From: Podarcis liolepis
Lineage: Eukaryota
DNA length: 64,000 nucleotides
NCBI GenBank assembly: GCA_965112155.1
Contig: OZ218099.1
Reading direction: 5' to 3' (one strand)
This document shows positions 2,650 to 32,580 of the stretch, piece after piece (the stretch's first letter is position 1; each line of letters starts with the position of its first letter). Under the pieces are notes generated by a model. It saw only the letters and a list, made by a program, of their open reading frames with translations, was not told the origin of the DNA and ran no database searches. The translations under genes were made by a program, and so were the position numbers.

Positions 2650-2819
2650 CAGATCATCTTGATCTTCAATCCATAGAAGTTCAGCAGCCCTAAAACGACT
2701 GCACGAAGAATTGGCTTCTTCCCAGCGTTTTTCAGCATCAATATGGACAGAGAAATAGTAACAGTATCTGTTCCAGTAGCGCCATTTACCCATATCTGGA
2801 CATCTCTGGCTGACTGTGC
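2650..2819 (-). CDS. Exon 17: CTLD4 part a (TVSQRCPDMGKWRYWNRYCYYFSVHIDAEKRWEEANSSCSRFRAAELLWIEDQDDL); gene continues beyond the window start
   Basis: 170 nt, phase 1 to 0, aag| and |gtatgg; CTLD motif. Confidence 0.92.
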
Positions 2820-3591
2820 CTTTAAAAACAAATGCACAAAAAGCCACTTCATACTCATGCCAAAACAAATATGCAAAACATTTACCCTGTGCAAACAGAA
2901 ACTTCCCAGTCTCAAGAAATTCACTCTCATGATATCAACAAAAAATATAGGGATGGCCTGTAGAAAAAGACAGAGAAACTACATTTTCCAGAGAACTGTG
3001 GATTTGGTAAAGATTAGCTCAAATTCAGATTGGGGTGGGGGGAATAGCTCCCCTTATTCCAATCCAAAGAGAATCCATGGGGTGCCAATCACTAGTTTCC
3101 ACAACCATCATGATTCACTGGGGCAGAAATATGTATCTGATCTGTGAACAACACACTGCATAATATTTATTCTGCTTGGAGGCTTTTCCCAATTCATTGC
3201 AATGTAGAAGTCATATTCAGAGAATGGTTCTTGTTACAGAACTGGCTAAACTAGGCATTAAATTTGCGTGTAATCACCTCTGAAAGGATGAGCAGGCGCT
3301 CAAACAATGCTAGTGCAGCCACTCTTAAGGCATGGTCCTAGTCTCCATCATTCAAAGGGTGGTACTAAGAGCATGAACATCTGCTCTGTACTGAGCTAAG
3401 CAACTACAAGACAAAATATGCACCAGGGCACATGGGGAAACAGCAGTGTTCTGTTTCATTTCCATTAAAATGATCCTGAAAACAGAGAAGCATTTAGGGA
3501 TATTTTGAAGACCCGCTTCAGCCACAGAACAAAGACAGCAATATTTCATATAAACTAAATTTATTTATTTTTGTTTGTTTTTTAAGCTTAC

Positions 3592-3735
3592 TTTCTGAAC
3601 ACCTCTCTATAGAGGATGTGTCTCTGCAGAAGGCTTTCTCATCACAGAAACCAGTCAACATGTTACAAAGGGCATTATCTCTGCATGGTGGACATTCTTC
3701 CCCACATCCATACCCGTAACGTCCTGGTGAACAAG
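3592..3735 (-). CDS. Exon 16: EGF-like module 3 (CSPGRYGYGCGEECPPCRDNALCNMLTGFCDEKAFCRDTSSIERCSE)
   Basis: 144 nt, phase 1 to 1, tag| and |gtaagc; same 8-Cys spacing. Confidence 0.92.
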
Positions 3736-4142
3736 CTAGAGTGCAGAGAATTTCAATATTTTTAAAGTAACAAAGCAGGCTTGGACATCTATGTATGAGA
3801 AAAATATTCCAAGCTACAAATACACAGGCAAACATATAGGGAGGAATTCAACATAGTATTAAGGAGATAATTTTGTCAGCACAAGAATTTCTGCTTGCCT
3901 GATGGAATGAGTTCTCCTCTCCTCCTCCCATGTACTGTTCTAGGGATTATCCTGACCTCCCCATGAGCAAATTTTGGGGCCATGGTGGGGAGGATGGAGA
4001 AGCCACAGCATGCTATCGGAAGTTGCTGCGTGGGCTTTCACTAGGTGGACTGGTCAGCTGAATCCAGCCCTAATATTTTTTTACAGTAAGATTCAGTGTT
4101 TTACCACAGCAACATGCTTCACCATGGACAAACTACTGATTA

Positions 4143-4387
4143 CCATCATATCTTGGATCTCAAACACCTTGGCTCCTGAACAAATCGCCTCCTGAACGAT
4201 TGAAACCCAGAAGTGTTCTGGTTGTCGAACAATTTTTGGAAGCCAAATGTCCAGCGCTGCTTCCGATTGGATGCAGGATGCTCCTGCAGCCAATCAGAAG
4301 CTGTGCCTTGGTTTTTGAATGGTTCCAGGAGTCAAAACGGTTTTTGAATGGTTCCGGGAGTTCTGTTCAAGAACCAAGGTACAACTG
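4143..4387. mobile_element. Old Tc1/Tigger-like MITE, related to 46228-46430
   Basis: Ends ...aaggtacaactg|ta and shares the internal ctcctgcagccaatcagaagc...ccttggttt. Confidence 0.55.
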
Positions 4388-5519
4388 TACTGCACAATCC
4401 TCTTGTCAACAGTAAAGGGAGTCAATAACCAGTGAGTGGGCATCACACCAAGCAGCCCAACTGAGACCTGTAAAGAGACCATGACCTATAGAAGGCTGTT
4501 CAGAAGATACTGCAGCCTTCAAGATGAAAAATTATGTTTCAGGAAGAAGTAAATAAGGACTACTAAAACTGTAAATAATTACAGCAGTGTTAAATTCTGA
4601 ATCATCACTTCAGCTTATGGAATTATACCCATTCTGGATGCTTTGTCTCAGCCTGTGTGAAATAAATCACGGAGTGATGTACTAACAGGGTTGAGCAGAG
4701 AATGTATGAGTTGGACTATTCTAAAACATCATGGGATCTCCTCCTTTCTTATCTGTGCTGATTATTAAAACCTGGATGTGTTCCCAACACTTCCAGGTGC
4801 TTCAAACTCAAAAGCTAAGCAGCATTTTCTCATTCTCAGCTGAACATAGAACAGTAAGCAGAAAATCATATTACTACAGTGAGAGCAGCTGGAGTTGGCT
4901 CAGCATTGTTTTAAAGCAGCAATCAAATAGAAAACATAAAAAACCCTGAGTATTACTGTGACAGTTGCAAAGCAGGTAAATTGTATAAAAGTTCCAATAA
5001 ACCCCTAGAATACAATAGGATGTATGACTGCCCTGAGAAAGCCACAGAATAGCAACAAAATATATGGGTCATTTGTGAGGAAAGTACTGTAGTTCCCCGC
5101 AACAGCATGGAAACACTGTGGGCAACACAACCCTAAAAGAGTAATATAAGCATATGGATATTTAGCACCTTTGATACAGAAGAAATACAAAGTGCAATAA
5201 CTTACTTTATCATCCAAGTGCTAAGCAACAAGATAAATAGAAATTTACAAGAAGGAAAAATACAGAATTAAACATGTTAGGCAACGTAACAGTTAATGTT
5301 GTCAAATATCAAGATGTTGGCAAGGCTATGCTACGTCTGCCAGCTCCAGTTTCCACAGCTTACTATATCTCTTGGGCCTTTATTTAACCTCCCTTTCCAA
5401 TTACATTCTACTACATTTGTCTTTTATTTTCTACTATGCTCCCTCTTCTTCAGTTTGTCTATCCTGGTCAATTCACTTTTCTCCATTTCTTCTATGCTGT
5501 ACGTGCTCTCTCACTAGCG

Positions 5520-5557
<38 letters not shown>
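5520..5557. repeat. (CT)n(CA)n microsatellite
   Basis: Seen directly. Confidence 0.95.
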
Positions 5558-5809
5558 ATGTATGTCAGTATTGTATCACCAAGTTATCATATTCCCCCCT
5601 CCCCCAATTTGGTTTGCTTCCTATGCTTCCTAGCTCAATATCTCTTAGACCAGTAGTTCTCAAACTGTGTGCCAAGTCCCATGGTATAATATGAGGGTAC
5701 CCCTCAAAAGCATGTTAGCACTTTTTGAATGGCTCCTGGAATGCATTGGGATGGGTTGGAACCTGCAAGCTTCAAGATAAAAAACATGCTCTCAAGTTTA
5801 TTATTTAGC

Positions 5810-6300
5810 AGGATACTGAGCCATCTCAATGTAACATGGGATACAACTAGCATGCCTCCAGATGATCTCAGTGTTTGGGCTGGGATATTAGGGTTCAGAC
5901 ACTCCTTATGGTAACCTGGACTCAAACTGTTCAGGGCTTTGGCTATTGACATACGGTAATATATGAACCCGGCCCAGTAGCATATAGGCAGCCAGTCCAG
6001 ATGTTTTAGCAGAGGTGCCACATGCTGTTGGCTTTCTGACCCCATCTGCAGTCAAACTGACGCTTTCTTCACCTGCTGGAGGTTCCAAAGTAGGGCAGTA
6101 CTACATACCGTGCATTACAGTAATCCAGACTTGAAGTTACCAATTCATGGACTACAGTGTCCAAGTTATCCCAATCCAAATACGAGCGTAGCTGGTATAC
6201 TAGGTGAAACTGCTAGAGATATTTGGGCCTCTTGTACCTAGGTGTATCTAGGAGTACTACCAAGTTACAGACCTGCTCCTTTAGGAGTGCAACCCCATCC
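5810..6300 (-). mobile_element. L2-type LINE ORF2 3' remnant
   Basis: Minus strand encodes an LDYCN motif (ctggattactgtaatgca) and HVAPLLKHLDWLPI. Confidence 0.7.
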
Positions 6301-6513
6301 ACAAATTTTGTTGGCTCCCACCCCCACAAGGAATCACTTTATAGGAAAAAATCCCTAAATTTGGTCAATTTTTAAGTTCTACTGGTTCTGATCCTTCACA
6401 ATATTTCCAGGACATTTCAAACTCCTATTTGGAGCTATTATAGCTCGGAATTTTGAATCTTTACTCAGCATTCCAGTGCACCAAACAACTACAAAACCAG
6501 AAATGATTCTTAC

Positions 6514-6723
6514 CGGTCTTCAAGTGAAATACATGATGCCTCACACCTGATACCATTTCCATTCCTGTGACAAGAAAATGTTTGTCTGGCCAGCTACTTA
6601 TTCCAGTACAGTTCTCTCTTAATATACAAAAGAATCTTGCTTCCTCAAAGTTTTTGTACACAGCCAGGGGGTGAACAGCCAGCATTATTTTCCCAGGGTA
6701 TTCAATGAAAATGTCAGGACCAA
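6514..6723 (-). CDS. Exon 15: middle module 3 (GPDIFIEYPGKIML...EEARFFCILRENCTGIS...FHLKT)
   Basis: 210 nt, phase 1 to 1, aag| and |gtaaga; A...C.....CTGI motif. Confidence 0.88.
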
Positions 6724-6949
6724 CTTTTTTAAAAAAGAAGAGACAATTTAGTAACATGATTATAATTTAGTAGCAAGATTACTGACAGCATGAATATGAA
6801 AGAAAGCAAATTTAGGAATCTTAGTCACTACAATGAATCATACTTACTCTGGGCAAATTCAGATTCATAATCATAAAACAGAGCAAAAGGTTACGTGATC
6901 CTATGATGAGCATTTATATTGTATAACAATCAAATATTCCAATCAGTAC

Positions 6950-7062
6950 CTATTTCTTTTTTACAAACATAGAAATGTTGCTCAGTGCATGGTAATGCCA
7001 TAAGTCTGCCTCCTCTAACCATCGTAACACATCCATTTGCTGTGGCAGGAAAGTCCCATAAC
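6950..7062 (-). CDS. Exon 14: CTLD3 part c (LWDFPATANGCVTMVRGGRLMALPCTEQHFYVCKKEI)
   Basis: 113 nt, phase 2 to 1, cag| and |gtactg; CV...G.....PC......YVCK motif. Confidence 0.92.
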
Positions 7063-7796
7063 CTGATTAAAAATATAAAAAATAAGCTGGTAGAATTAAC
7101 AATGCAGTTTATTTATACTCTCTGCCTTACAAAATTTTAAAAAACCCAACAACTGAATATCCCATACATTTCTGTACTCTATACAGCAGTATTCCTGAGA
7201 ATGCAGAACCAATTTGTTTACTTCATAGAGCGACTTTATAATGTTGTATGTTGTCTAATTAAAAGCAAACCGGAAACATTTCTAGAATATGTAGAAAAAA
7301 CTGAAATCTAAAAGCAGAATTCAAACAAAAAGCAGATGGCATAGAAATTAGGGACATCTCTGAGAGTCCATTTCCCAAATTAAAAGAGAATGGATGAAAC
7401 AATAGCTCAACACTAAACATAGTAGTGTGGTGTCACAGGAAAGTGGGACCAACTGCCTTTATATTACTGAACAGAACAAAAATCCAGTTATATTGATAAA
7501 CAGGCAGCCCCCAGTTTACGCATGTTCAATATGTGCACGACCAAGTCTATACAAATCATGCCAAATGTGGAAGTGACCTGGAAATGCCATAAAGACGTCA
7601 CTGAAAGGGTGGAATAGAGGCAAGGGCAGAACGAGGTGTTTGCAGGCTTTTTCAATGGTTTTCTTTGGAATGCAAAATGTTAACGGAGGCGACCTGTAAA
7701 TTGGGAGGGGAGATTTCCCTAAACCTAAGAAATTAATAAATGTCAGAATCTAGCTAATATTTGGATAAGGACTGGAAAATGCAACCTGCTGAACTG

Positions 7797-8328
7797 TGTC
7801 AGATGTGGAATCCCTGGGTTGGTGCCTGGTAACTAGGTGCAGAGCCATTAAAAACCAATACCAGGGCCATTAAGGATTTTGGCAATACAAATGAACTGTC
7901 CTCTCCACCACCCATCCTGGTTCTGAGGAGTGGACAGAGGCAGGACAATTAACAGGAGATGGGGAGGGGTGACTAGAAAAAGAGTAATTTCATAGGAGGC
8001 TTGGGTTTTGGGTGAGAGGTGTGCTGGGAAAGAGAACAAAGGTCAGACCCCAAGAACTGCTGGGCAGGCAGAACCAACTTGGCTGCTGCCTGGAAGAGGC
8101 TGCATTAAGAGACAAGGGGCCATGACTGACTGCTGCATTGGAACTAAGCTTGCTGAAGCTATGGGGGGGGGTGGGATGAGAGACACTCTTAGGGTAAAAT
8201 GTTCTGCACCCCCTCCATTGTAGATTTCCAGGGGTAAATGTGTTAATAAACCAAATTTCTTAAAGACACTAGCCTCCACTGTCTTTCCAATGGAAACGCA
8301 ATCCTGGGTAAGCTCCTGGAATCTCACA
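7797..8328 (+). mobile_element. Possible old solo LTR
   Basis: TG...CA ends and aataaa near 8245; no clean TSD. Confidence 0.3.
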
Positions 8329-8634
8329 CTGCACATGGAGATTATGGTGACATGTAACAATATTATTCCATTCAAACAAAACTGAAGGAAGGCAGTCACA
8401 AAAGAATGGGGGGGAAATGTATATCTTCCAGAGAATAACTCTCTCCGTCAGTCTGTAGGCCTTACCTTCCAAAATGCTTCTCATCACCAAAGCCTTCTTT
8501 AGCATCCTCTTCTGATGACAATTTGTGAGTTATAACTGAGCAAGAGTGTTATTAAAAACAATGCTCAATAGGTACTATGGAAGTAACTATGGAACTATGC
8601 TCTTTTCCTGCAACTGCTGAAATTGAATGCTTAC

Positions 8635-8747
8635 CAGGAGTAGTGTAATGGATCAACAGCTTCTCGGCCGTCACTCCATTTCCATACACTTCCTTCCTGT
8701 AGCAAACCAATCCAACTCTGACTTTCCATCATAGTATTAAGCCACTT
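8635..8747 (-). CDS. Exon 13: CTLD3 part b (KWLNTMMESQSWIGLLQEGSVWKWSDGREAVDPLHYSW)
   Basis: 113 nt, phase 0 to 2, tag| and |gtaagc; WIGL and WKWSDG motifs. Confidence 0.93.
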
Positions 8748-9242
8748 CTAGAAAAAGAAATCTCTTTTAAAAACAGCTTATCAAATTTAAGACCTGAACA
8801 AATATCTGGAATCTGTATTGGGATGGATGGAATTCAACAGGTACTGTTGGTTGATGACAGATGCAAGCTACAGAACCCTGCTAGACAAAGGATCCTTGGG
8901 ATGGCTTATGCAAAGTCATTAAAAGACAAAGATGTTGATTGCCACCATTAGCACATCAAAGGAAGGGTCTCAGGACTGTGAAAGACAGGGTAGTCAAGGT
9001 GATAGGGAGGGAGCAGGTGGTGCTCACATGAAAAAAATATGCCTCTGAAAATGTTCTTGGGATAGGGAGGAGTTGCTTGGAGTAGGGATGTGCTGGGAAG
9101 AAGAAGGGGAACAAAAGCCAGAAATAATCTTGGCAGGGTGACTGAAGTAAGGGTGGGCTCCAGTGCTGCACTGCTGTGGGGAACACGCCCCTCTTGCAAT
9201 GACTCCTTCCATCTAAATTCAGGTGTAAGTATGTGAATAAGA

Positions 9243-9572
9243 AGGACGCGGGTGGTGCTGTGGGTTAAATCACAGAGCCTAGGACTTGCCCATCAGAAGG
9301 TCGGACGGGGTGAGCTCCCGTTGCTCGGTCCCTGCTCCTGTCCACCTAGCAGTTCAAAAGCACGTCAAAGTGCAAATAAATAGGTACCGCTCCGGCGGGA
9401 AGGTAAACGGTGTTTCCGTGCGCTGCTCTGGTTCGCCAGAAGCGGCTTAGTCATGCCGGCCACATGACCCAGAAGCTGTACGCCGGCTCCCTCGGCCAAT
9501 AAAGCGAGATGAGCACCGCAACCCCAGAGTCGGTCATGACTGGACCTAATGGTCAGAGGTCCCTTTACCTTT
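9243..9572 (+). mobile_element. Sauria SINE (lacertid type) with B-box deletion
   Basis: ggacgcgggtggtgctgtgggttaaa head, ccctttacctt tail, 13-bp TSD tatgtgaataaga (9230-9242, 9573-9585). Confidence 0.93.
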
Positions 9573-9853
9573 TATGTGAATAAGACATATTTCTTAAAGC
9601 TACAACAGCTTCCACTGCGTCTTGATTCTTAAAGGAGCACAGATTCTGGTTGGGCACCTAGAACTGTCCTGGAATCTTGCTACTGCTCGGCAGTCAGTAG
9701 AAGTGCTAAGCCTTTGTAACACTACTTAAAACACTGGTACAGGCGTTACAGCTCTTCAGCCATGTACTTCAGGCCTTGATGGTAAATAGATTGATACAAG
9801 CAATTTTCCTCCCACTATTCCCTAGATTGCTTTTTAGCACCAGCTAGTTTACT

Positions 9854-10040
9854 CAAGCTGGTCATCACAAACACTCTTTTCCAACAACACAAGAGACAAC
9901 TCTACACATGGACATCACCAGATGGGCAGCATCGAAATCAGATTGATTATATTCTCTGCAGCCAAAGATGGAGAAGCTCAATACAGTCAGCAAAAACAAG
10001 ACCTGGAGCTGACTGTGGCACAGATCATCACCTTCTTATC
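9854..10040 (+). mobile_element. RTE-BovB endonuclease-domain fragment
   Basis: Translates as KLVITNTLFQQHKRQLYTWTSPDGQHRNQIDYILCSQRWRSSIQSAKTRPGADCGTDHHLL. Confidence 0.9.
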
Positions 10041-10599
10041 ATCACAGCACCTATACACTGGGCTAGATATAGCAGGACTTTCAAGGTACAAATCTACTTT
10101 GTTTTTTTCTTGAGAGGGAGTACTATTAGTTTTCTTTAGTTCTTAGCCATCCAGCTAGCCTTTTCCCTCCCTCTGTTGTACCTTAGTGCATGTACCTAGC
10201 TTGGCTAGAGAACGGTCTAGGCTCTGCTCACCAGTCTCCCAAACGACCTGCCAGCCAGTCCCATTTCTGAGGCTTACATGCCTTCCACACCCTTCTGCCT
10301 TTTTGGCTTGAGCAATAGGGAGAGAAAACCATCTTCAATGGGTCAGATTTGGCTTATGAATTTCCAGCAGTCTATTACCTCTTCAGTCTAAATGATTACA
10401 TATCTGATCAAATGTAAAAAGTTGCAGTGCATTAAACCTAAATTAGTCAGTTTTAAATGTACTTATGCCTGTTCTTTTCAATGATCTGATGTGTATGATT
10501 GGGTTTTTGCCTTTTTGAAATATTTCCAGCTGCTTTTCCTGAAAACAGGAAGAAAGGTAGCCTAAACTGAAACTAGCAATGTTTAAACCTTTTACAGTA

Positions 10600-10838
10600 C
10601 AGTGGTACCTCGGGTTACATGTTTCAGGTTACACACGCTTCAGGTTACAGACTCCGCTAACCCAGACATATTACCTCAGTTTAAGAACTTTGCTTCAGGA
10701 TGAGAATAGAAATCATGCTCCGGCGGCACGGCAGCAGCGGGAGGCCCCATTAGCTAAAGTGGTACTTCAGGTTAAGAACAGTTTCAGGTTAAGAACGGAC
10801 CTCCAGAACGAATTAAGTACTTAACTGAGGTACCATTA
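10600..10838 (+). mobile_element. Tc1/Tigger-like MITE family A
   Basis: TIR CAGTGGTACCTCGGGTTA, TA flanks; same family at 29701-29914 and 56545-56914. Confidence 0.85.
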
Positions 10839-10886
10839 TATGTCTTTTTGTTGTCTCAAATTTATCCTTGCACTGAAGTACAATAC

Positions 10887-11050
10887 CTTTTCCTTTTCAT
10901 TGTCAATTTTGACAAGGTTGACATCCTTGTAGTATGAACACTGCATGCTTGCCTGTGCGTACTGCTGTTTCCTTTTCTTTTCAAAATAATAGCAGTGTCC
11001 ATCATAAAACCACCATGGGGCATTCTGTGGACATTTTGGATTCCTGATGC
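10887..11050 (-). CDS. Exon 12: CTLD3 part a (IRNPKCPQNAPWWFYDGHCYYFEKKRKQQYAQASMQCSYYKDVNLVKIDNEKEK)
   Basis: 164 nt, phase 1 to 0, cag| and |gtattg; CTLD motif; not in the ORF track. Confidence 0.92.
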
Positions 11051-11628
11051 CTGAAATGAAGAAAATTATAAGGAAACTAATGCTGATCTCTTATGTCAAG
11101 TGAGAACTGAACCTTTCTCTATAGTTGAGGATAATATCCATGATTGGATTTCTCCTCCAACTTGCTCCAAAAGACAGGTATGCCATCTGCAGTGGGCAGC
11201 CTGGCATCTTGCCTGCTCCAAAAAAGCAGCTTCAGGCACAGCTCTGCTTCTCTCCGTTATTATTCTTATTCTTATTCTTAAGTGGTGAGTGTGTGATCTT
11301 TCCACGGGAGCATTTGATTGGCTGGAAGTGCATGGTATTTCACACATAACTGGTGCAATTACTCCCTCTTCCAGTGAGGAGAGATTTTTGGTTATGTTCC
11401 ATCTTCCCAGGATTTTTCCATTGTTTGTTTGTCCTCTTGCTTGTAAATGCACCCCTTCCTTGTGACAATGGTTCTGTTTGTTTTCTTCTTAGAACACAAC
11501 CACTACCCAAGTTTTGCAAATGTCTAAACGTTGGTCTTCAGATTTGGTTTCACTAGCGGCTATTTTAGCTATTTCTAATATCAGAGAAAGAAGACAGGCT
11601 GACTCAACTGCCCTCCAGTAAGATTACA

Positions 11629-11911
11629 GCGAGTCTCTTCATCTAGCGGTTTTTTCGTCTTGCAAAGCAACCCTATTAGCGGCTTAGCGGCTTAGCGCTA
11701 TTAGCGGTTTAGCGGCTATTAAAGGCTTAGCAGCTATTAAAGGCTTAGCGGATTAGCGGCTATTAGCGGCTTAGAAAAAGGGGGGGGGAGAGCGGAAGAA
11801 AATCGGAACACTCGCAAGACATTTTCGTCTTGCAAAGCAAGCCCATAGGGAAAATCGTCTTGCGAAGCAGCTCAAAAACGGAAAACCCATTCGTCTTGCA
11901 GGGCACCACTG
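11629..11911 (-). mobile_element. Tc1/Tigger-like MITE family B, truncated at one end
   Basis: Ends gtcttgcagggcaccactg|ta; internal ttagcggc repeats as in 27621-28987 and 46546-46888. Confidence 0.75.
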
Positions 11912-13071
11912 TATTTATTCTTTTCCATACAGCCTTAGCTATATCACATGCTAAACTAAAGCATCATGGCCAACCCCGCAGTGCAGCAGCTTTTAGTACT
12001 CCAAGTGACAGGAACACATTCTGACAGATATTCAGCCAGTTAGACTACAGTCCTTTATGTATTTACCTGAAAGTAAACCTCACTCAAATCAGTATGCCTA
12101 AATTTTTATTAAACATGAATAGTTTACTAGGACAGGTCACAATCTTGCAGAAACTAGAGGTGTGCCAAACCATTCATTTTATTTTCATTAATATTTTCAT
12201 CATGAAGCAAAAGCTCATGTATAATGCAGATATTCTGAAGCAAAAGTTGGTTGCAATGTTTGCCATTATACTATTTTCTGAGGTTTCACAACTGTACACC
12301 CTTTTCTTCATTCAAAAGCACTACCAGTTACACATATCAAATTTGCACTGAACGGAATCATGCTATTTTAACATGTTTTTTGCTTCACATTACCAACTGT
12401 ATTTGCATCTGTTTGCATTTACTTTCTAATGCTTTTCTACTGAAGTTCATACTGTGGCTAGCCTTTTGTTTTGAGCTGCCTCCAGAGATATGTAGTTTTA
12501 GTCATTATGCCTTGTCTCTAAGCCTGTCTGAAAAACGTTTCCTTAAAAACAGCACCAACAAATCTCATAAGCATTTTGTAGCAACATCACCACATTGTAT
12601 CTGCTTTTAAATAAGCATATTTTTGTATTTTCCATTTTTTCTGTCATGGAGACTAATGAGCGCATCTAGCAAATACTGTATACAAATTGCGTGTTTTTAG
12701 TTTTGAGAAATGGCACAAACAAGAAAACTTCTATTTTGGAAATAAGAAGGGTAGAGGGTATTGTGGGTAAAAAAAGTTCATGCAGATTGCACATGCTGGC
12801 GAACATATTCAAAACATCATGTTACAATGAAAAATCTAAGGATGGAATTTTTTAAAAACCCCAACTACTTTGTTATTTGAGCAAGTGGTCTCATATGCAT
12901 TTCATCCTGCTGTGGTTTTACACTTGGTTGAATTCAGTGGAAATACCCTTAACCTCCCCTGTAAATTAATCTGTTATTTGCAAGGGTTCTACCAAGGCAA
13001 CCAAAATTTTCCAAAGCAAGACAGCTCCACCCTTGCAAAATAAACATTCTAGATTTTCATTTGTGCTTATA

Positions 13072-13330: not shown

Positions 13331-13378
13331 TATATAGACAAAAAACCCCACACAAATCTGTTCAAAGTAATACTGTAC

Positions 13379-13522
13379 CTAATTCACACAGTTCACCTTT
13401 GAACTGGCCAATACACTGCATCCTTTCTGGGCACTTGCCATTTACTGAATTACACCTGAATCCTCCATAGCATTTTTTACAATTGGATGCACAGTTATAA
13501 CCATAGAAACGAAAGTTACACT
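13379..13522 (-). CDS. Exon 11: EGF-like module 2 (CNFRFYGYNCASNCKKCYGGFRCNSVNGKCPERMQCIGQFKGELCEL)
   Basis: 144 nt, phase 1 to 1, cag| and |gtacag; Cys spacing identical to exon 6. Confidence 0.92.
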
Positions 13523-15186: not shown

Positions 15187-15396
15187 CACGTCTTATGTAT
15201 GCAGTTGCACTTTCATCATAAGTAACAATTATATCAACACCTCTTGTTCTTCTGTAGTATCGGTAATCTTTCACTATTCCTGTGCAGCTGGCATCATTTA
15301 AGCAGTCTAATGCAGCGGTGGAAAAGGAGGTATAAAAGTGAGGTTCTAATGGTCCTGACAGAAAGTGATCAGTATAGACATCAAAAAGATTTTCCA
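15187..15396 (-). CDS. Exon 10: middle module 2 (ENLFDVYTDHFL...AALDCLNDASCTGIV...TAYIRR)
   Basis: 210 nt, phase 1 to 1, cag| and |gtatgt; A...C.....CTGI motif. Confidence 0.88.
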
Positions 15397-18182: not shown

Positions 18183-18298
18183 CTTCAATTCTCTTGCAAA
18201 TAAATTTGTGTTTTTCCTCACAATTTAGTCTCAGAGCAGTTTGGTCTACTGAATTAAGACCCATACATCTTCCAGCTGGGCTCCCTTTTAGTTCCAAC
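18183..18298 (-). CDS. Exon 9: CTLD2 part c (LELKGSPAGRCMGLNSVDQTALRLNCEEKHKFICKRIE)
   Basis: 116 nt, phase 2 to 1, cag| and |gtaaac; C...C.....FICK motif. Confidence 0.92.
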
Positions 18299-19513: not shown

Positions 19514-19629
19514 CAGTGTAATGCTTTAGCAGCTGATTTCATATTTGACCAAATCCATATGGATTTTTGCTTCCTGCTATTCAGCCCAGTCCACAAAATG
19601 TCACGAGGGTTTACAGAGGACAACCAGTC
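19514..19629 (-). CDS. Exon 8: CTLD2 part b (DWLSSVNPRDILWTGLNSRKQKSIWIWSNMKSAAKALHW)
   Basis: 116 nt, phase 0 to 2, cag| and |gtacat; WTGL and W.WS motifs; not in the ORF track. Confidence 0.9.
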
Positions 19630-21131: not shown

Positions 21132-21134
<3 letters not shown>

Positions 21135-21181
<47 letters not shown>

Positions 21182-21256: not shown

Positions 21257-21417
21257 CATTTCACTTCTGCTTCCAATCCATACGAGGTCTGTACTTCTGA
21301 ATCTTCTGCACTGTTTCCGAGAATCTGCCCAGCTGATGCTGACATTGCTGAAGTAATAGCAGCCATTTCCCCAATATTTCCAACCAGAAAATCGTGGACA
21401 CCATGCACTGCTCATAG
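21257..21417 (-). CDS. Exon 7: CTLD2 part a (MSSAWCPRFSGWKYWGNGCYYFSNVSISWADSRKQCRRFRSTDLVWIGSRSEM)
   Basis: 161 nt, phase 1 to 0, tag| and |gtattt; CTLD motif. Confidence 0.92.
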
Positions 21418-23142: not shown

Positions 23143-23286
23143 CTCGATCACAAATAGTAGGCGAGTCCTGAGCTCTACAAGAATGAAAATTATCACAAAC
23201 TCCAGTGTATGGATTGCATAGTTCATCACCATAACATCCGCTGCAAACAGAGGAACAGTTCTTTCCAAAGTAACCCAAGGAGCAAT
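23143..23286 (-). CDS. Exon 6: EGF-like module 1 (CSLGYFGKNCSSVCSGCYGDELCNPYTGVCDNFHSCRAQDSPTICDR)
   Basis: 144 nt, phase 1 to 1, tag| and |gtactt; 8 Cys in a MEGF/SCARF-like register. Confidence 0.92.
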
Positions 23287-23769
23287 CTATGAAAAATAAT
23301 AAAAAGGACATAACAATAATCATATTTGCCTTCCACAGTTCTCTGTTTCTTCTCCTGGTCATCTAATACTTAGGTTTTATTTATTTCATTTCAGAAATTA
23401 TAAACCATTATACAGAGAATACCCAAGTAGTGTACAGAATATCCATTCCTCTTTCCCTTTTATGCCAAGCTCTCTCAAACTCTTTCTTCACACTATCAAA
23501 ATACTTTCCACAAAGATTCTGCTCTTGAAATGAGAATAAAACATGCAAGCTATCAAAATGAATGTTTGCTCAAAATGCAGCATTTTAATTTTATATTTCT
23601 TTCAGCTGAAACTTAAAGCCTTTTTCATTTAAGGCAAAGAACTCACATTCTGATTACATCTCAGAATGCTCAGTCCCTAGTTCTATAAATTGTATCAGTC
23701 AGTTTTTCTGTTATCACATAATGCATAATACAATACTGTGAGCTGCAATCTACAGAATGTTTGGCCAAC

Positions 23770-23988
23770 CTGATTTGACATATGCTGCAGACCAGCGCTC
23801 TTCACTTTTTAGCAATACAGTTCCTCTAGCAATCGCATAGGCATTTTTCCAGATAGTGATCCCTGTACATTGTTCTCTAAGCTCCAAGCATGCTGCCTTT
23901 GCAGAAATCAAATCTGCATGTACTTGAGATACAGAGCCTGGTGGTGATAGAAGCACCTTTCCTTTGTGTTCCTGGTACCGGTCAACAG
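23770..23988 (-). CDS. Exon 5: middle module 1, PAN/apple-like (VDRYQEHKGKVLL...AKAACLELREQCTGIT...AAYVKS)
   Basis: 219 nt, phase 1 to 1, cag| and |gttggc; homologous to exons 10 and 15. Confidence 0.88.
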
Positions 23989-25286
23989 CTGCAATAGGAA
24001 ATAGAAGCCACACAGTAATGCAACCAGTTTAAATTAGTTGCACAAAATTGCCAGACTCACACTGGAATCAATTCCCAATATATATTAAAAGTGTGCAAAT
24101 GCCAGTTAGGATTTGGCACACATCTTTACTTCAAGCATCATGTAACACTGTAGGCTTTTATCATTACTACGAAGTAAAAGCAGCAAGAATGGGTGGAACA
24201 GTTATTCAACTTTACATATCACAAGAATTATCAACTCCCACAGGGTCAACAATGGCAAGATGTTTGGCTAAATGGTCTATAGCTGAGCCCTGTTGAGATT
24301 TAACATGTTGTCCTATATGGAAGATTGATCTTATTTTTAGTCAATTGATTGCAATGCTCCCTGTGAGGTGGTATTAAGTATGCTGGGTTAACTGCCCACA
24401 GGGTGAGAGTTTGTTGGTGGAGAAGGGCTTAAATGAAAGATGGGGTGAGGGTGTTTGCATTGCTCGAGGTGAGAGAAGGGATGGAAATTATTGGGGTTGA
24501 GCTTTTCACCTGCTGTCGTGTACATATGCACTAAGTTGTTAAATGGAATTGAGTGGATGGAGTGAAGTTGTGCATGCATGAAAAGTATGATTCTTGAGTG
24601 ACTCAATATAACAGTTGGTTCCTCAATTCCAGATTTGTATTTTTTATATATGAAGACACCTAGTTTTGTAATATTTATGATTTGTTTTTGTTTTTCCTTA
24701 TGTATACTGTGTGGATATATTTACTCCTTAATTCTCTTATTTAAAATGTATCAGATATTAATAGCAGTTGGATTGAATGTGGAATCTGTATGTAACATAT
24801 TTTGAGCCAGATTGAACTAAGTGGTCTGGTCCTGCTAGTGGAATCCCATGTGAAGACTTCTGATAGCACACCACACTCTCTTCCCCACACATGCCTCAGC
24901 TGGCTCTAGGAGGGTCAGGGAAACACGCAGAACAATTAGTAGAGCAGGGATGGGAGAGATTGTTCCATCAGGCATACAGGAAATGCTTGAACTGACAGAA
25001 TGTTTGGAAAGCAACAATGTTGAATTCCTCCCTTTGATTTCTGTTAAGATGTAAACCGCTTAGAGATTTTCTGAAATATTAGGTGATATACCAGTTCAAT
25101 AAATGAAAAAGCAACCAAACATTAGATTTCTCTGAATATACAGGCAATAAAATCTGCATTTGGATTATTTCATCATATACCATGCCAGTGGGATAGGAAA
25201 AAGCTAACCATTTGAGTATCTGTCTGGAAATCACAGATAAATTGGAAAAATTTAAGGAATTAAAAACCTGTAAAAACCATACTCAC

Positions 25287-25405
25287 CTGTATTTCGCTTG
25301 CAGATCCAATGGGCCTTTTCATTGCAATGCAAAGCAACCAAGCGACGTTTGGAAACTTTCACACAATGCACAGTATTTGGCTGGGCTGGGGACGATAGCT
25401 GAAGC
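25287..25405 (-). CDS. Exon 4: CTLD1 part c (LQLSSPAQPNTVHCVKVSKRRLVALHCNEKAHWICKRNT)
   Basis: 119 nt, phase 2 to 1, |gtgagt donor; CV...C......ICK motif; the acceptor polypyrimidine tract is weak. Confidence 0.88.
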
Positions 25406-26129
25406 CTTTCCAATTAGATTTTAGTACAACAAAAGAGAAAAATTACATGATGTAACAGTGAAAACATGACTGCAAAAATATGCTCTTTCAAAATACTGAT
25501 GTCAGAGATCACACTGATATTGTAATGTCTTCTGTCTCCAGTGTATTGCCCTTCCTCCTGGTAATTAAGGGCTTTTCCAGATGTATGCCCTCTGAGCTCC
25601 TGGTTAAGTGGCATGCCCCAAGAGAATCACTGGGCCCTCCAAGACAGAAAGAATTACAAAAGGGTTCTCTCTGGGAACTTAAGACTGTGCATGAAAACAG
25701 TTGTATTCATGGCTCTAACTATGGCATGCCTGCTGGTTTCTTGGTCCCCTCTAACAATGGCCTACACCACGGTCCTATTAATATTCTATGGAAATGTAAA
25801 CATAAGAAAAGTTTTGTGAATGCCAATGCTAATAGGCCTTGTTGCCACATTAAAAGGGGGGGAGAGACTGTTGATGAAACATTCTGGCTTACCATAGTCC
25901 TATGTTCCTCAGCATCTTTTTACTGTTTTTTCATTATTATTATTCTCTATTTGTTTATCTATATTTGTTTACCCCATGATATCAATAACACAAAATCCCA
26001 ATACACAGGATGAATGGAATACATGTGGTGAAAGAAAGAAAAAATACACTTGCATAGTTACAAACACCCCTGATACAATCATATCAGAGGAAAACAAATC
26101 ATACTTCAATTGTGTTTTTTAATTCTTAC

Positions 26130-26242
26130 CAAGGAAGCCTCATATTTGCTGGTGTACCTTCTGACCATGAAAAAGTGTTAATATTTTCCAAGTTATTTAA
26201 TCCAGTCCAAAAATCATCCAAAGGTAAAGCTAAGATCCAGTT
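26130..26242 (-). CDS. Exon 3: CTLD1 part b (NWILALPLDDFWTGLNNLENINTFSWSEGTPANMRLPW)
   Basis: 113 nt, phase 0 to 2, cag| and |gtaaga; WTGL and F.WS.G motifs. Confidence 0.92.
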
Positions 26243-27253
26243 CTGTGGAAAAACAATGGCAAAGTTTAAGATATTTTGACATACAAACCATATCGGCAAA
26301 AATATATTCACCTGGACCTCACATCTCTTTTATTTATTTTATAATTTATGTTTTCCAATACTTTTTATGATCCTACCTTCCAAGCCTTCCTAGATATTAC
26401 ATCCCTTAAATAATGTTGTTTCTACTTGTACAGTACACTAAGAATTAGTTCAAAGATACTAATGTTCCCGACATTCATAAGAAAACATTTGTTGGCTCAA
26501 AGAAGTTAAATGATTTGTGATGTCACATGGGAGTACAGAGAAAAAGATCAAGAAGTTCTTATTGCTCATCTGTTTGTAAGTGAGAACAAATCTGGTGTGA
26601 ACAACTAGTAATTATCGGCTACTCTTGAGTTACAGTAAAATCATTTCCGATTTTATCAGGTTTCATTGATGTAACTCAAAAACAGCATCATCTGCTCATC
26701 TGTTGCATAATTCATAACTAAGACTGTAATATAAACTGCAATACTGTCAAATGTCTTGTTACCTAGGATTTGCTGGTTTCTCTGTAACCTAATAATCTGG
26801 TTGGCCACTTAGAGAACAAGATGCTGGACTAGGTGAGCCTGTTCCAGTAGAGAAGCTCACCTGGTACCTATCTTAATGTCATTGAGGTGCTTGGTGAACA
26901 CACTTTTGCAGGCCTTTTATTCTGTTCCTGTTTTACATTTGCTTCATCTGATTCATCATTGTAATGCTGCTTGTGTATATTTTATTGGTTGTATCCAATG
27001 GTGCTACTCTGTTCCAACACAACTCTGACATATTCTAGAGGTGTCTATAAACAGAAGGTGGGTAGGAAAGTTTTGCTAACTGGATTTTTATGTACTTATT
27101 GTTGTAACCCTGCTCTGATTGTTGGTCTCGCAAGATACAATTTTTAATTAATGAATGTGATTTTGTGGACTATACTATGTAAATGCAATATCTGTTTGGG
27201 CAGAAAGTGTCCTCAATGTATAGATACAAAAAGTAAATATACATGCAACTTAC

Positions 27254-27417
27254 CATTTCCTGACTACTAGTAAATGATACTAATTCTGTAAAGCTGTATC
27301 TCTTGCAAAATTTTAGCGCTTCTGTCCAAGTCCCCGTAATATTTGCCTCTAGGCAATAACAATTTCCATTCCAGTAGCGCCAGCAGGGTGCTTGAGGACA
27401 ATTCAGTCTGAATCTAG
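27254..27417 (-). CDS. Exon 2: CTLD1 part a (ARFRLNCPQAPCWRYWNGNCYCLEANITGTWTEALKFCKRYSFTELVSFTSSQEM)
   Basis: 164 nt, phase 1 to 0, aag| and |gtaagt; CP..W..W...CY...W..A...C......L..S..E is the canonical CTLD N-terminal pattern; not in the ORF track. Confidence 0.92.
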
Positions 27418-27942
27418 CTTTAGACGGGAAAAAGTAATTTAATTATTATATTCTAACGTAAATTGAAGACGGTTTATAATTTATTGCTGCCCTTATTCCT
27501 CTTGAAACTTCTACCTCCATCTAGATTCTTCAGTCACCAAGCCAGAATAGAGAACACTGTACATTCTGCAACTATTGCATCCTGACTCTGACTTCACACC
27601 CACCTTGATAAAACAGATTACAGTGGTGCCCCGCAAGATGAATGCCTCGCAAGACGGAAAACCCGCTAGACAAAAGGGTTTTCCGTTTTTGAGCTGCTTC
27701 GCAAGACGATTTTCCCTATGGGCTTGCTTTGCAAGACGAAAACGTCTTGCGAGTGTTCCGATTTTCCCCCGCTTCCCCCCCATTTTTCTAAGCCGCTAAG
27801 CCGCTAATAGCCTTTTAGCCGCTAATCCGCTAAGCCTTTAATAGCCGCTAAGCCTTTAATAGCGCTAAGCCGCTAAGCCGCTAATAGGGTTGCTTCGCAA
27901 GACGAAAAAACCGCTAGACGAAGAGACTCGCGGAACGGATTA

Positions 27943-28961
27943 CCGTATTTTTCGCCCCAAAGGACGCTCCGTCCCATAGGACGCGCCTAGTTTTTTGGGG
28001 GGGAAATAAAGGAAAAAAAAATTCCCTTTATTTCCCCCCCAAAAGCAGGTTGGGGAAACAGAACCAGGTCGAGGAACAGCGGGATGGCGGCGCTGCGGCT
28101 CCCTGCTGTCCCCCGAGCTTGTGGGGCTGGCCGATGTCTGCCCCGCACGAGGGGCGCTCTGCATCAGGGCGCCCCCCCCCCCCGCGGGGCAGCAGGCTGC
28201 TATCCGCAGCGTGGGGAGCCTTGCGGAGAACTCCTGCAAGGCTCCCCACGCTGCGGATGTCTGCCCGGTGCGGGGGGCGCTCTGCTTCAGGGCGCCCCTC
28301 GCGCTGGGCAGCAGGCTGCTATCCGCAGCGTGGGGAGCCTTGTGGGGAACTCCTGCAAGGCTCCCTATGCTGCGGATGTCTGCCTGGGCAGGGGGCGCTC
28401 TGCATCAGGGCGCCTCCCCTTGCGGGGCAGCAGGCTGCCATCCGCAGCGTGGGGAGCCTTGCGGGGAACTCCTGCAAGGCTCCCCACGCTGCGGATGTCT
28501 GCCCGGTGCGGGGGGCGCTCTGCTTCAGGGCGCCCCTCGCGCTGGGCGGCAGGCTGCTATCCGCAGCGTGGGGAGCCTTGCAGGGAACTCCTGCAAGGCT
28601 CCCCACGCTGCGGATGTCTGCCTGGCGCAGGGGGCGCTCTGCTTCAGGGCACCCCTCGCGCAGGGCAGCAGGCTGCTATCCGCAGCGTGGGGAGCCTTGC
28701 GGGGAACTCCTGCAAGGCTCCCCACGCTGCGGATGTCTGCCTGGCGCGGGGGGTGCTCTGCTTCAGGGCGCCCCTCGCGCTGGGCAGCAGGCTGCTATCC
28801 GCAGCCTAGACATCCCTGCCGGACCTCCCGTAGGGCTGCCTAGGCTGCGGATGTGTTCTTGAAGCCTCAGCAAAAGCCTGCATTCGCCCCATAGGACGCA
28901 CCCAGATTTCCCCTTCATTTTTGGAGGGGAAAAAGTGTGTCCTATAGGGCGAAAAATACGG
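27943..28961. mobile_element. Nested Tc2/pogo-like non-autonomous element
   Basis: TIRs CCGTATTTTTCGCCC and GGGCGAAAAATACGG with TA TSD (27941-27942, 28962-28963). Confidence 0.88.
28130..28855. repeat. 119-bp GC-rich tandem repeat, each unit containing a long inverted repeat
   Basis: Unit starts at 28201, 28320, 28439, 28558, 28677 and 28796 (exact 119-bp period). Confidence 0.95.
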
Positions 28962-29700
28962 TAATTTTGTCTTGCGAGGCACCACTGTAGATAGGATGAG
29001 TGGGTTGCTTGTTTCAACAGAAAATTGAAAAATAGAAACATGCAAAAAGCAGTTACGCAAGAAAAAATGTTATTTTATTACACTTAGATTACGTCTAGCT
29101 AAAGCAAGTCAACATCCACTTCTAATCCTGCCTGTATATTTAGAAGCAAGTTTCTTATAAGAGATAAGGCAGGAAAGAAAAGCAACAAAATTGTTTTTTG
29201 GTGAGCCCAGAAACAACCCAAGTAAATGCTTAATCCTCACTTTTTCTCTGTATGTGCCTCTACACAATCATATGTGCAAAAATAGAAGTACTAAATTCTA
29301 TAATCTTCTCCAGGAATGTGTTGGGTTTAGTTCAAAAGTATGTAAGCACAGGCATATATTTTATTCTTTTCCTTTTTTGTCTCCTATACCTGCTCAGTTG
29401 ATTACCTTGAAGTTGCAGCCTCTCTACCAGTCTATATAAATATTATGTGTATTAGGTATCCAGCATTAACCTCTTTTATATCACCTTGATTTCAAATGGA
29501 AAAATTAAGCACAAACTTAATCTTCTGTTAACAGAAAAATCTAAGTGCAGAAATCCACTATCTAAATCTAAAAACACACATTTTGGGATGTTCAGAAGCT
29601 TCTGTGCATATGCAGAGGGCCCCAGTTCTAACAGTCAATACAGGTGCCTTTAGGGGAGTCTTCTCATGCATGCCACTGGCCACTCAGCTTCACATCAATA

Positions 29701-29914
29701 CAGTGGTACCTTGGGTTAAGAACTTAATTCATTCTGGAGGTCTGTTCTTAACCTGAGGTACCACTTTAGCTAAAGGGGCCTCCTGCTTCCGCTGCATGAT
29801 TTCTGTTCTCATCCTGAAGCAAAGTTCTTAACCCGAGGTACTATTTCTGGGTTAGCGGAGTCTGTAACCTGAAGTGTCTGTAACCTGAGGCATCTGTAAC
29901 CAGAGGTACCACTG
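29701..29914 (-). mobile_element. MITE family A, inverted copy
   Basis: ta|CAGTGGTACC...GGTACCACTG|ta. Confidence 0.85.
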
Positions 29915-30955
29915 TAATAGCCTTTCCATGCCAGAGAGAACAAAGAAAATGAATGGGCTATTTTCCCACTTTTTTCTGGTGGTTGCTCTTGCCAAGAGCT
30001 GGAATAGGAAAAAACACTGCTGCCAAAGAGAGAGAAATTAAGAACTGCCTCTGCAGCTCCTTCTTTGTTCTCTCTGGCAAAGAGAAGCTGGAGCAGCTTT
30101 AAGGTGAGTGGGCAAGAGTAACAGGGGATATCAGCTTGCCCAAAATATAAAAAGGTGCAGGTTGGAAAGAGAATATCTAGCCATGGGAAACAGTACTGGT
30201 GTTGGAAGTTGAGCCAATTCACAGAAGCTCATACATGCAGCAAGGTTCACTAATGTGTGAACCAACCTTAAGATATTTCATTTACAGCTTTCTGAACCTA
30301 CTTCAGAACCTATAAACACACTCAAAATTTAAGGGACTCATATAATCTACTTTTGATGCATCTTAACAATGCAAACTATGTGGAGCATTAAAAACTGTGT
30401 CTATGTGAATAAACATGTTCTCATTGAATCATGTGCTCTGCAGTTTGGAATCCTTGTGTATTATTTCTACAACACCTTTACCTGCCTAGAAAAACTATAT
30501 CCACTGATTAAGAGGCATAGGTGTGAGTTTTCCGAAAAATTTAGAACTGAGTTTCCCCCCAATGCATATTAGGGTAATTTGCACTAAGAAGCTGTTTGCA
30601 ACAGACAAATTTCTGATGACTTAAAAACTGATCTAATTTTGCATGTTTATTTCACCTGAATTTAGTAAACCAAAGCTAAAAACATCTTTCATTATGTCAT
30701 CTTAGACAACAAAGGCCTATTCCTTCTCCATATGAGCCCACTCGCCACCCGAAATTTAATCAACAGGTTTTATTGTCTACCCTCTTTACAGAAGTATAGG
30801 ATGGTAAAGGCTAAGGGTTATATCCAACAAAGTTGTCCAGTTAGCACAAGGACTTCTACTTGTGCAACAGAACTTCTCTGTCCTCTCTTCTCCCCATATG
30901 CCCCCACAATCTGTTCCAGAGAGTTGGGGAAACCCAAAGCAAACTGCGATGTATG

Positions 30956-31381
30956 CATGCGTGTAGCCAAGGGAGGGCAGGGGGGCAGCTGCCCCTCTAG
31001 ATTAATAAAAATAAAAATACTTAACTGAGGGTCCCAGGGACGCGGACTTATAAAAAATATTGGGGGGGGGGGCCGGGAAAGCTCATGAATAATAAATAAG
31101 CTCATGAATATGCAAATAAAGTGGCGCCGCCTCCTCGTGAGCGAATAGGGGAGAGCGTGCTGCGCCTATTAATCAGCTCCGGAGCGGAAATTGGGTGGAG
31201 CTTTTGCTCGGGAGGGAGGGCAGGAGGCATGCAGCCCGACCCTGTGCATTTTGGGCTGGGGGAGGGCGGTGGTGGCGCTCTGCTGGAGGGGCGCCGGAGA
31301 TTATTGGGGGGGGCGGAGCCCCCCAAACGTATTTTTGAGGGGGTTCGGGCCCCCTCAAGCCCCATGGAGTCGGCGCCTATG
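30956..31381. mobile_element. hAT-like non-autonomous element fragments (possibly two abutting copies)
   Basis: Left end catgcgtgtagccaagggagggcagggggcagc is shared with 44983-45104; right end ggagtcggcgcctatg. Confidence 0.5.
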
Positions 31382-31417
31382 GGTCTGCCCCCCCTAAAAA
31401 AAACCCACCTGGCTATT

Positions 31418-31462
<45 letters not shown>
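31418..31462. repeat. (GT)n(GA)n microsatellite
   Basis: Seen directly. Confidence 0.95.
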
Positions 31463-31463
<1 letters not shown>

Positions 31464-32129
31464 ATAACAGCTGGAGAAAGAACAGTTGTGCAAGTGTAAA
31501 GTCCTTGCACTAACATAGTTACTTCATTGGACACAATCCTAAGAAAGATCTAAGCATTCTACATCCTGGCCCAAACTAAACACACAAAACTGAGCACAGA
31601 AAGAATTCCCTTAAGAACTCACCTTGCCTTTATTTTGGGGGGTTTTTTTAGAAATAAGTGGGGCAAGTGGAAAACCGCTTGGACTCATGCTTTCTAGGCA
31701 CAAGCAGAAGTGTAGCCGGAGCCTAGCCTTTACCTTTCCCACAGAGCGCCAGCATCCTGCGACTATAACACCGCAGAAGCTACTTAATCACGAATGTGGT
31801 CTGCCCTGACTAGCAGAGGCTCTGCAGGATTTCACATCTCCCCCAGCCCTACCCTAGAGACGCCAGGGGTGAAATCTGGGACCTTGTGTTGCAACGCAGG
31901 TGTTCAACCTCCGTCTTCTTTGGGTGCTTCTGCCCCCCCCCCTCTTATAGTGACAAAAACTGCCAAGGGCACAGGACAGGTGTGTGTTGTGTGCTCTGGA
32001 TCGGCTAACCCAGCCTTGAGCAGCTGCTGGAAAGGAAAGGGCAGAGGTAAAATCACCTCGGGTACAGTTCAAGCCTTTCCCCAAAGGACGGGATGGGACT
32101 GGATCTCTGCTGTGGGTGTTTTTATTTGC

Positions 32130-32580
32130 ATTGTTTGCGACGGCAACACCTGTTCGCAGCGCAACCTTCGTTTACCTGCATCCCACGTGTCGCCATGGAC
32201 CAAGCGCACGTGCAGCGCCAACAGGAGCAGCGAAAGCAGCAGCAGCCCGGGCGCCATTAGAGCGCCTCTACCGCTGCTGCCGCTGCTGCTGCTGCTACTA
32301 CTATGCGAGGCTCTTGTGGCTCCTCCCCACCGTGGGCGGAATCGGCGCCAGAGTTCAACCGTCGTCCTCTCGCGCCTCGAGAACACTTCTGCGCATGCTC
32401 GGTCCCGCGCGCAGAAGCCGAGTTCCCGCCCCCGAACTCCCTCCGCCAATCCCCGCTCCCTCCTCCCTCCCTTTCTTATAACGTTGGACTCAGACAATTC
32501 TCCTGGCTAAAAAAGCCGGCTCTTGCTTTCAGGTCCCTCCGCCGCCGTTCCCTGTTATCTTATTATACACGCACAGCGGT
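32130..32580 (-). promoter_or_regulatory. CpG-island promoter and 5' UTR of the lectin-repeat gene
   Basis: High CpG density around exon 1; GC box cccgccccc ~32425, CCAAT 32446-32450, NRF1-like tgcgcatgc ~32390; short CAG-type repeat in the 5' UTR (32271-32305). Confidence 0.7.
32176..32257 (-). CDS. Lectin-repeat gene exon 1: signal peptide MAPGLLLLSLLLLALHVRLVHGDTWD(A)
   Basis: ATG at 32257 inside a CpG island, hydrophobic Leu stretch, likely cleavage after VHG, phase-1 donor CAG|gtaaac that matches the exon 2 phase. Confidence 0.85.

Follow-up and report, generated by a model that had tools for sequence, protein, structure and literature searches.

The vertebrate C-type lectin-like domain (CTLD) superfamily is commonly divided into 17 architectural groups, which were defined largely from mammals and fish. 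The mannose-receptor family (group VI: MRC1, MRC2, PLA2R1 and LY75) comprises large, multivalent type I membrane proteins with 8-10 long-form CTLDs placed contiguously, most of them without sugar-binding residues. The CTLD group XIV (CD93, thrombomodulin, CLEC14A and CD248) and the selectins are type I membrane proteins that combine CTLD and EGF, with one N-terminal CTLD followed by runs of EGF repeats, plus sushi or mucin regions. We describe here a gene on the minus strand of a 64,000-nucleotide stretch of the lizard Podarcis liolepis (GenBank assembly GCA_965112155.1, contig OZ218099.1), called the window below, whose product alternates CTLDs with a 70-residue middle module and an EGF-like module. 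Our analysis makes it quite probable that the window holds the 5' part of an intact orthologue of LOC114591207, a multi-unit CTLD-PAN-EGF membrane protein that most likely serves as a multivalent surface binding receptor.

The gene is real and is intact over the portion lying in the window, far beyond chance given the colinear alignment of its exons to a lizard protein of 2211 residues. Cys/Trp-rich segments recur with a three-fold periodicity in the minus-strand stop-to-stop frames from 32.5 kb down to 2.6 kb, and the splice sites read from the sequence define 17 exons from an ATG at 32257 down to the last donor after 2650. AG acceptors and GT donors stand at the exon borders of all 17 exons with compatible phases, and the exons sum up to 2502 nt, i.e. 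834 codons, with no stop in the exon bodies or the split codons by an arithmetic check. The window exons were searched singly in all homology searches, and the phase and stop checks used the coordinates and single split codons. A preliminary description of this stretch had counted 17 in-phase exons and 834 stop-free codons; our independent rebuilding gave the same count, and it recovered the signal peptide, the three complete CTLD/middle/EGF units and the opening exon of CTLD4, as well as the five sequons NIT, NCS, NVS, NCT and NSS, in exons 2, 6, 7, 15 and 17, respectively. The intron phases are the same in each unit: phase 1 before the first CTLD exon (part a), 0 between parts a and b, 2 between b and c, and 1 on either side of both the middle-module exon and the EGF exon. 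The middle and EGF modules are thus symmetrical 1-1 exons, as is typical of extracellular modules that spread by exon shuffling.

Exon 1 (32176..32257) provides the ATG, the signal peptide and a phase 1 donor GT, and aligns to residues 1-36 of the Podarcis muralis orthologue P0088. The signal peptide has a hydrophobic core of about 15 residues with likely cleavage after VHG, and the segment 1-22 of P0088 scores as transmembrane-like. A CpG island does cover the first exon and the presumed promoter, as had been proposed (32001..32500, GC 0.60 and CpG observed/expected ratio 0.90, vs 0.0-0.3 in the neighbouring 500-bp bins). At the other end the gene runs on past the left window edge after exon 17, and tblastn with the orthologues found no additional exon left of 2641 within the window. 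Since the 17 exons correspond to residues 1-837 of the 2211 in P0088, the window covers about 38% of the coding sequence, and roughly 27 more exons would lie to its left.

The window gene is the orthologue of LOC114591207 of Podarcis muralis (P0088, 2211 aa), an XP-type Gnomon model annotated as 'uncharacterized protein'. The exons are colinear with P0088, with tblastn E-values from 5e-06 (exon 1) to 6e-41, and 807 of 821 residues are identical (98.3%, counted over whole codons inside exons only). By the same count the Rhineura orthologue is 79.5% identical, the Crocodylus one 52.7% and the caecilian one 40.8%. P0088 and the window gene agree in their exon ends and in the order of the units, and every cysteine is kept.

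The family is widespread among non-avian reptiles and amphibians, and its long members bear no functional name. We ran a profile of the middle module, built from the alignment of the three copies in the window, against 1.84 billion representative proteins. It matched 63 proteins, led by sequences of 1,700-2,230 aa with 7-8 matches each (E from 2e-122 to 6e-80), which are NCBI models 'uncharacterized protein LOC...' from Rhineura, Gavialis, Geotrypetes, turtles and snakes. A search with the Rhineura protein as query gave 15 long orthologues of about 1,340-2,870 aa, none of them functionally named. The orthologues come from squamates (Podarcis, Phrynocephalus, Hemicordylus, Anolis, Crotalus, Paroedura, Notechis and Sceloporus), crocodilians (e.g. 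Crocodylus), turtles (e.g. Pelodiscus) and caecilians (e.g. Geotrypetes), and every named match in both protein searches is a non-avian reptile or an amphibian. P0004 seemed to offer an N-terminal fragment but was dropped, because exons are skipped in this faulty model and a transposase tail is attached to it. Fragments of the family carry automated names such as 'macrophage mannose receptor 1-like', 'secretory phospholipase A2 receptor-like', 'C-type mannose receptor 2-like' and 'CD207'. The earlier expectation that annotation pipelines would label the gene uncharacterised or mannose-receptor-like is thus borne out, by the full-length orthologues for the first label and by the fragments for the second. 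The gene is already present as an unnamed automated model in many annotated genomes, and a literature search found nothing on this architecture or on six of the orthologue LOC identifiers.

The orthologues provide the repeat count and the membrane anchor, which the preliminary description had left to be sought beyond the window. A signal peptide comes first, eight [CTLD-middle-EGF] units follow, and a ninth CTLD leads to a single transmembrane helix and a short tail. HMMs made from the window modules placed the middle and EGF modules in eight alternating pairs, one pair every 250 aa or so, in lizard, amphisbaenian, snake, crocodile, turtle and caecilian, the seventh middle-module copy falling below the HMM threshold in several orthologues. 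Pfam recognised 8-9 Lectin_C stretches on the full-length orthologues and no other domain. The single hydrophobic helix lies 15-50 residues from the C-terminus and is preceded by CTLD9. The tail differs completely among squamates, crocodile, turtle and caecilian, except for a juxtamembrane basic/aromatic patch, and no Tyr-based or dihydrophobic motif is conserved in the orthologue tails. By homology to these models, the product of the window gene would be a single-pass type I membrane glycoprotein some 2,200 residues long.

Could the functional product instead be mainly a secreted or shed extracellular scaffold, such as a matrix, mucus or egg-coat component? We consider this rather unlikely, while noting that a very large modular ectodomain with a tiny, unconserved tail would suit such a product, that many secreted proteins contain PAN and EGF modules, and that the predicted isoforms X2-X5 in several species could include forms without the transmembrane helix. 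However, both the helix and CTLD9 next to the membrane have been kept from caecilian to lizard, which argues that the anchor is under selection. The preliminary description had spoken of a 'multivalent lectin-like receptor or secreted scaffold'; because the orthologues show a membrane anchor, the receptor half of this reading is now the better supported one and the scaffold half recedes.

The lectin modules are CTLDs, as originally labelled, with Lectin_C (PF00059) matching P0088 at E 4.5e-80 in 8 stretches. The single window exons match Lectin_C weakly (E 0.018-0.14), at the expected profile positions 34-65 and 77-107, and NCBIfam gave no relevant match. CTLD1 is encoded by exon 2 (27254..27417, part a with C0, C0', C1 and the NIT sequon, phase 1 in and 0 out, 53/54 residues identical to P0088), exon 3 (26130..26242, part b with a WTGL motif, phase 0 in and 2 out, 37/37 identical, weak Lectin_C match at profile 40-65) and exon 4 (25287..25405, part c with C2, C3 and C4, phase 2 in and 1 out, a split codon for Trp, 38/39 identical, weak match at profile 77-107). 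The corresponding parts of CTLD2 are exon 7 (21257..21417, with the NVS sequon, 53/53 identical), exon 8 (19514..19629, 38/38) and exon 9 (18183..18298, 38/38), and those of CTLD3 are exon 12 (10887..11050, 53/54), exon 13 (8635..8747, 37/37, weak match at profile 34-63) and exon 14 (6950..7062, 34/37, weak match at profile 78-107). Exon 17 (2650..2819), the last one in the window, holds part a of CTLD4 with the NSS sequon and is identical to P0088 in 56/56 residues, ending at residue 837 of 2211.

The CTLDs probably do not bind sugars in the classical Ca2+-dependent way. CTLD1-3 of the window show the long-form framework (C0, C0' and C1-C4) and the WIGL motif, and so do most of the nine CTLDs in P0088. 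An alignment of these nine showed WND before C3 in none of them and QPN in CTLD1 only, within a shortened loop, and we infer the lack of classical Ca2+-dependent sugar binding from these two observations; the EPN/QPD plus WND combination of Ca2+ site 2 occurs in 0 of the 9. The lectin reading of the preliminary description therefore stands for the fold and fails for the canonical Ca2+/sugar motifs, so that 'lectin-like' is the proper term. The nearest relatives with solved structures are DC-SIGN, CLEC-2 and Ly49 (E from 1e-10 to 1e-06), none of which is close.

The domain content of the orthologues excludes the characterised families that the preliminary description had listed, i.e. the mannose-receptor family, group XIV, the selectins and attractin. 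Neither FNII (PF00040) nor sushi, CUB or kelch domains were found by Pfam in the full-length orthologues, and Ricin-B/CysR (PF00652) is absent in P0088, P0001, P0003 and P0095, even at E 10 for P0088 and P0095. By contrast, the lizard MRC1-like protein P0102 carries both PF00652 and PF00040. It is the presence of Lectin_C only, without CysR, FNII, sushi, CUB and kelch, that rules these families out. Unlike the window family with its nine CTLDs, group XIV and the selectins have no PAN module and no CTLD repetition. The earlier claim that none of the listed families alternates CTLDs with these two modules thus holds up, the features that define the mannose-receptor family, group XIV and the selectins being absent here.

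We find it very unlikely that the gene product belongs to the mannose-receptor family (MRC1/MRC2/PLA2R1/LY75) as a divergent member and functions in endocytosis as a recycling lectin. The automated names of the fragments point in this direction, as do the nine CTLDs in a type I membrane protein and the distribution of each CTLD over three exons, which we take to be the arrangement in MRC1 and the type II receptor genes as well. However, besides lacking CysR and FNII, the window family never has adjacent CTLDs, since PAN and EGF modules always interleave with them where the mannose receptors have contiguous ones. The short tail, unconserved between orders, has no conserved endocytic motif, the sugar-binding residues of Ca2+ site 2 occur together in no CTLD, and MRC2, the sole mannose-receptor-family chain among the solved-structure matches listed, comes only at rank 36 (E 9e-07). 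Least credible of all is that the copy in this genome was recently silenced or is unexpressed and looks intact because it had too little time to decay, for which one may cite that little more than a third of the coding sequence is seen, but against which stand 2.5 kb of coding sequence over 17 exons without stop or frameshift, 32/32 canonical splice dinucleotides, the CpG island kept at exon 1, the near identity to the congener with all cysteines retained, and the maintenance of the family in four reptile and amphibian orders.

In our preferred reading, that of a multi-unit CTLD-PAN-EGF membrane protein, two modules stand between successive CTLDs. The middle module has about 70 residues and two cysteines per copy, making one Cys pair, and is encoded by exon 5 (23770..23988, phase 1-1, with a C..CTGI core, 71/72 residues identical to P0088), exon 10 (15187..15396, aligned with modules 1 and 3, 68/69 identical) and exon 15 (6514..6723, with the NCT sequon, 67/69 identical). 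We predicted its structure with AF2, using a 19-row alignment of the window modules and single-exon ORF fragments from other species. The model has a pLDDT of 90.9 and a beta-beta-alpha-beta4 topology. The top Foldseek matches to it are all HGF N domains, plasminogen PAp domains, Eimeria PAN domains or apple domains; the ten best rows have probabilities of 0.97-1.00 and TM scores of 0.64-0.73, with E-values of only about 0.1. In an independent structural search against representatives (VIA) the top match was plasminogen PAp, with a Z of 8.1 and an rmsd of 2.3 over 69/72 residues, followed by HGF N with a Z of 7.8; ranks 1-14 of this search, and most of the others to 24, are PAN/apple-type folds including WSC, MANEC and AMA1. 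A structural Z of 7-8 is not decisive by itself.

Evidence from sequence profiles and language-model clusters points the same way as the structures. The distant profile matches P0012 and P0018 have Pfam PAN_1 on the same matched stretch, and the nearest language-model (Atlas) clusters to the middle module are all PAN, at 0.90. Because of these two results and the homogeneous list of structural matches, we conclude that the middle module, as modelled, is a reduced PAN/apple domain that keeps a single disulfide. The PAN-like label of the preliminary description is thereby backed by structure prediction and structural searches. The likeness to the PAN/apple domains of plasminogen PAp, HGF N, prekallikrein/FXI and the apicomplexan MIC4/SML-2 lies in a beta-sheet that cradles a single helix, with a Z of 8.1-6.1 and an rmsd of 2.3-3.0 for 65-70 of the 72 residues. 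PAN domains usually have two or three disulfides, whereas the window module keeps one Cys pair only, from the helix to the central strand, and its sequence identity to the 14 best structural matches is 6-21%. The retained disulfide is presumably the helix-to-strand one of the plasminogen domain. Interferon tau and xylanases came up as possible relatives when the sequence profile was compared with the PDB chains, and were rejected as chance-level matches (E 0.3-1.2).

The remaining module appears to be EGF-like, of the MEGF/SCARF/PEAR1 type. It is encoded by exon 6 (23143..23286, phase 1-1, with the NCS sequon, identified by its Cys pattern and by profile and cluster matches), exon 11 (13379..13522) and exon 16 (3592..3735, 46/47 residues identical to P0088). 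The donor of exon 11 was set after 13379 by homology to units 1 and 3, despite a stronger-scoring GT after 13397; the orthologue alignment runs through 13377. Eight cysteines are invariant in the three units of the window, with the spacing C-x7-C-x3-C-x2-C-x5-C-x6-C-x5-C-x8-C and a G-x2-G motif. A profile of the module matched SCARF1 and an EGF-repeat protein best among the PDB chains, weakly (E 0.14-0.3). The nearest Atlas clusters are EGF_laminin/EGF_PEAR1L/MEGF6, at 0.90 with 177 shared features. The earlier EGF-like label is therefore retained and tentatively narrowed to the MEGF/SCARF type by the Cys spacing and the clusters, on weaker evidence than that for the CTLD or the PAN-like module. 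SCARF1/SREC-I, MEGF10/Draper and PEAR1 share with the window family the EGF spacing C-x2-G-x2-G-x2-C-x3-C and the type I membrane topology. However, their EGF repeats are contiguous and their cytoplasmic tails long and signalling, while in the window family single 8-Cys EGF modules are spacers between other domains, with a similarity below the Pfam thresholds.

The eight units are conserved individually and are not interchangeable. Within the lizard protein they are only 24-33% identical to one another, whereas lizard unit n is 37-53% identical to caecilian unit n, against 26-35% for units of different number. Lizard unit n and the same unit of crocodile or turtle are 36-66% identical, compared with 23-37% for other units. 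The module cysteines are all invariant in a 19-sequence alignment. Because units of the same number match best between lizard and caecilian, we hold that the array of eight units is older than the split between amphibians and amniotes, and that it has been neither homogenised nor reshuffled since.

The probabilities lean, by a modest margin, towards the product being a scavenger-like receptor at the cell surface, non-enzymatic and multivalent, that serves in binding or adhesion. In such a receptor the function would be carried by a long beaded ectodomain of 25 disulfide-stabilised modules, in which the eight individually conserved, non-equivalent units may offer distinct binding surfaces and the EGF modules may act as rigid spacers. 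The CTLDs would probably bind protein or non-canonical ligands, not sugars through the classical Ca2+ site, and the tail probably gives no signal by itself. Here we infer the type of ligand, the role as a receptor and the expression of the gene.

Several observations weigh against the membrane-receptor reading or restrict its basis. On the window exons Pfam PAN_1 and PAN_4 have no match, nor do they on the full-length orthologues at E 10, and the Pfam EGF models give no significant match on either. The transmembrane anchor and the number of units are taken from models of the orthologues; such models are predicted automatically and contain errors at times, as P0004 illustrates. The exon model is built on the genomic sequence and on homology, and intactness applies to the N-terminal part of the coding sequence that the window covers. 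An AF2 model of a two-unit turtle fragment of 478 aa, from a 19-row alignment, reached a pLDDT of 43.7 and is unusable for the geometry of the units. The receptor or adhesion mechanism, finally, is derived solely from the domain composition.

The family may be an undescribed group of vertebrate CTLD proteins. On balance we slightly favour the view that a 25-module receptor with eight units was fixed in the tetrapod ancestor, kept one-to-one, and retained in amphibians and all non-avian reptile orders, and that birds and mammals lost it independently of each other. The annotated proteomes of the searched libraries, which are protein sets and not genomes, gave no orthologue from birds, mammals or fish. 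The caecilian orthologue, with 38% overall identity, scored 6e-80, so a bird or mammal orthologue with a divergence like that of crocodile or turtle would have shown up in both searches. If this view is true, a function with up to eight distinct ligand-binding sites has been dispensed with, or handed to other receptors, in the endothermic tetrapods, and the family would give a tangible example with which to ask what receptor functions disappeared in the lineages of birds and mammals. It would also add a CTLD architecture outside the 17 groups. The family is large, old and tightly conserved per unit, with about 45% of its ectodomain, i.e. the PAN-like and EGF-like modules, invisible to Pfam; the one-disulfide PAN and 8-Cys EGF variants could seed domain models and improve the annotation of reptile and amphibian genomes. 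The architecture is new, the types of its component domains are known and the gene models are already public, and no principle is overturned.

Other proteins contain similar units. P0087 and P0024 are shorter frog relatives of the family. A paralogous pentraxin/LamG family, equally uncharacterised, is represented by LOC110087453 of Pogona (P0036), LOC134506037 of Candoia (P0101) and LOC142659107 of Rhinoderma (P0006). The CTLD-PAN-EGF units of these paralogues are the same as those of the window gene but number only two to four; a pentraxin/LamG domain and further CTLDs are present in addition, and the identity is no more than 25-28%. Five environmental proteins from ENA assemblies (P0011, P0012, P0018, P0026 and P0028, on contigs of up to 1.6 Mb) have 4-8 tandem copies resembling the middle module, which match its profile with E-values from 1e-17 to 9e-09, and two of the five proteins reach Pfam PAN_1.

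The upstream region 33000-64000 encodes no member of the family and no coding ORF recognisable by Pfam, and Rfam found no RNA family in the whole window. A second CpG island (47501-48000, GC 0.66, CpG observed/expected ratio 0.93) lies about 15 kb upstream of exon 1; the ORFs around it contain no Pfam-recognised coding sequence, and it could be the promoter of a neighbouring gene or an alternative first exon further upstream. Among ten long ORFs in and around the window, Pfam recognised a hAT remnant only: the ORF fragment 531-728 on the minus strand matches the C-terminal dimerisation region of hAT-family transposases at E 4.8e-04, just under the curated cut-off, and is probably a transposon relic within an intron. 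Intron 1 contains a GC-rich minisatellite (28133-28805) with 5.6 copies of a 119-bp unit and 90% matches, which gives rise to long spurious ORFs on both strands. A C-rich tandem repeat in the intron after exon 17 (1945-2280), with 13/39-bp units in about 8-25 copies, mimics a Pro/Ser/Arg-rich ORF. A short repeat family occurs at 841-1060, 1156-1284 and 1528-1578. Another interspersed repeat, of about 250-280 bp, is present in four copies that are 78-92% identical (27616-27900, 11660-11902 on the minus strand, 46544-46821 and 44729-44864 on the minus strand), two of which sit in introns of the gene.

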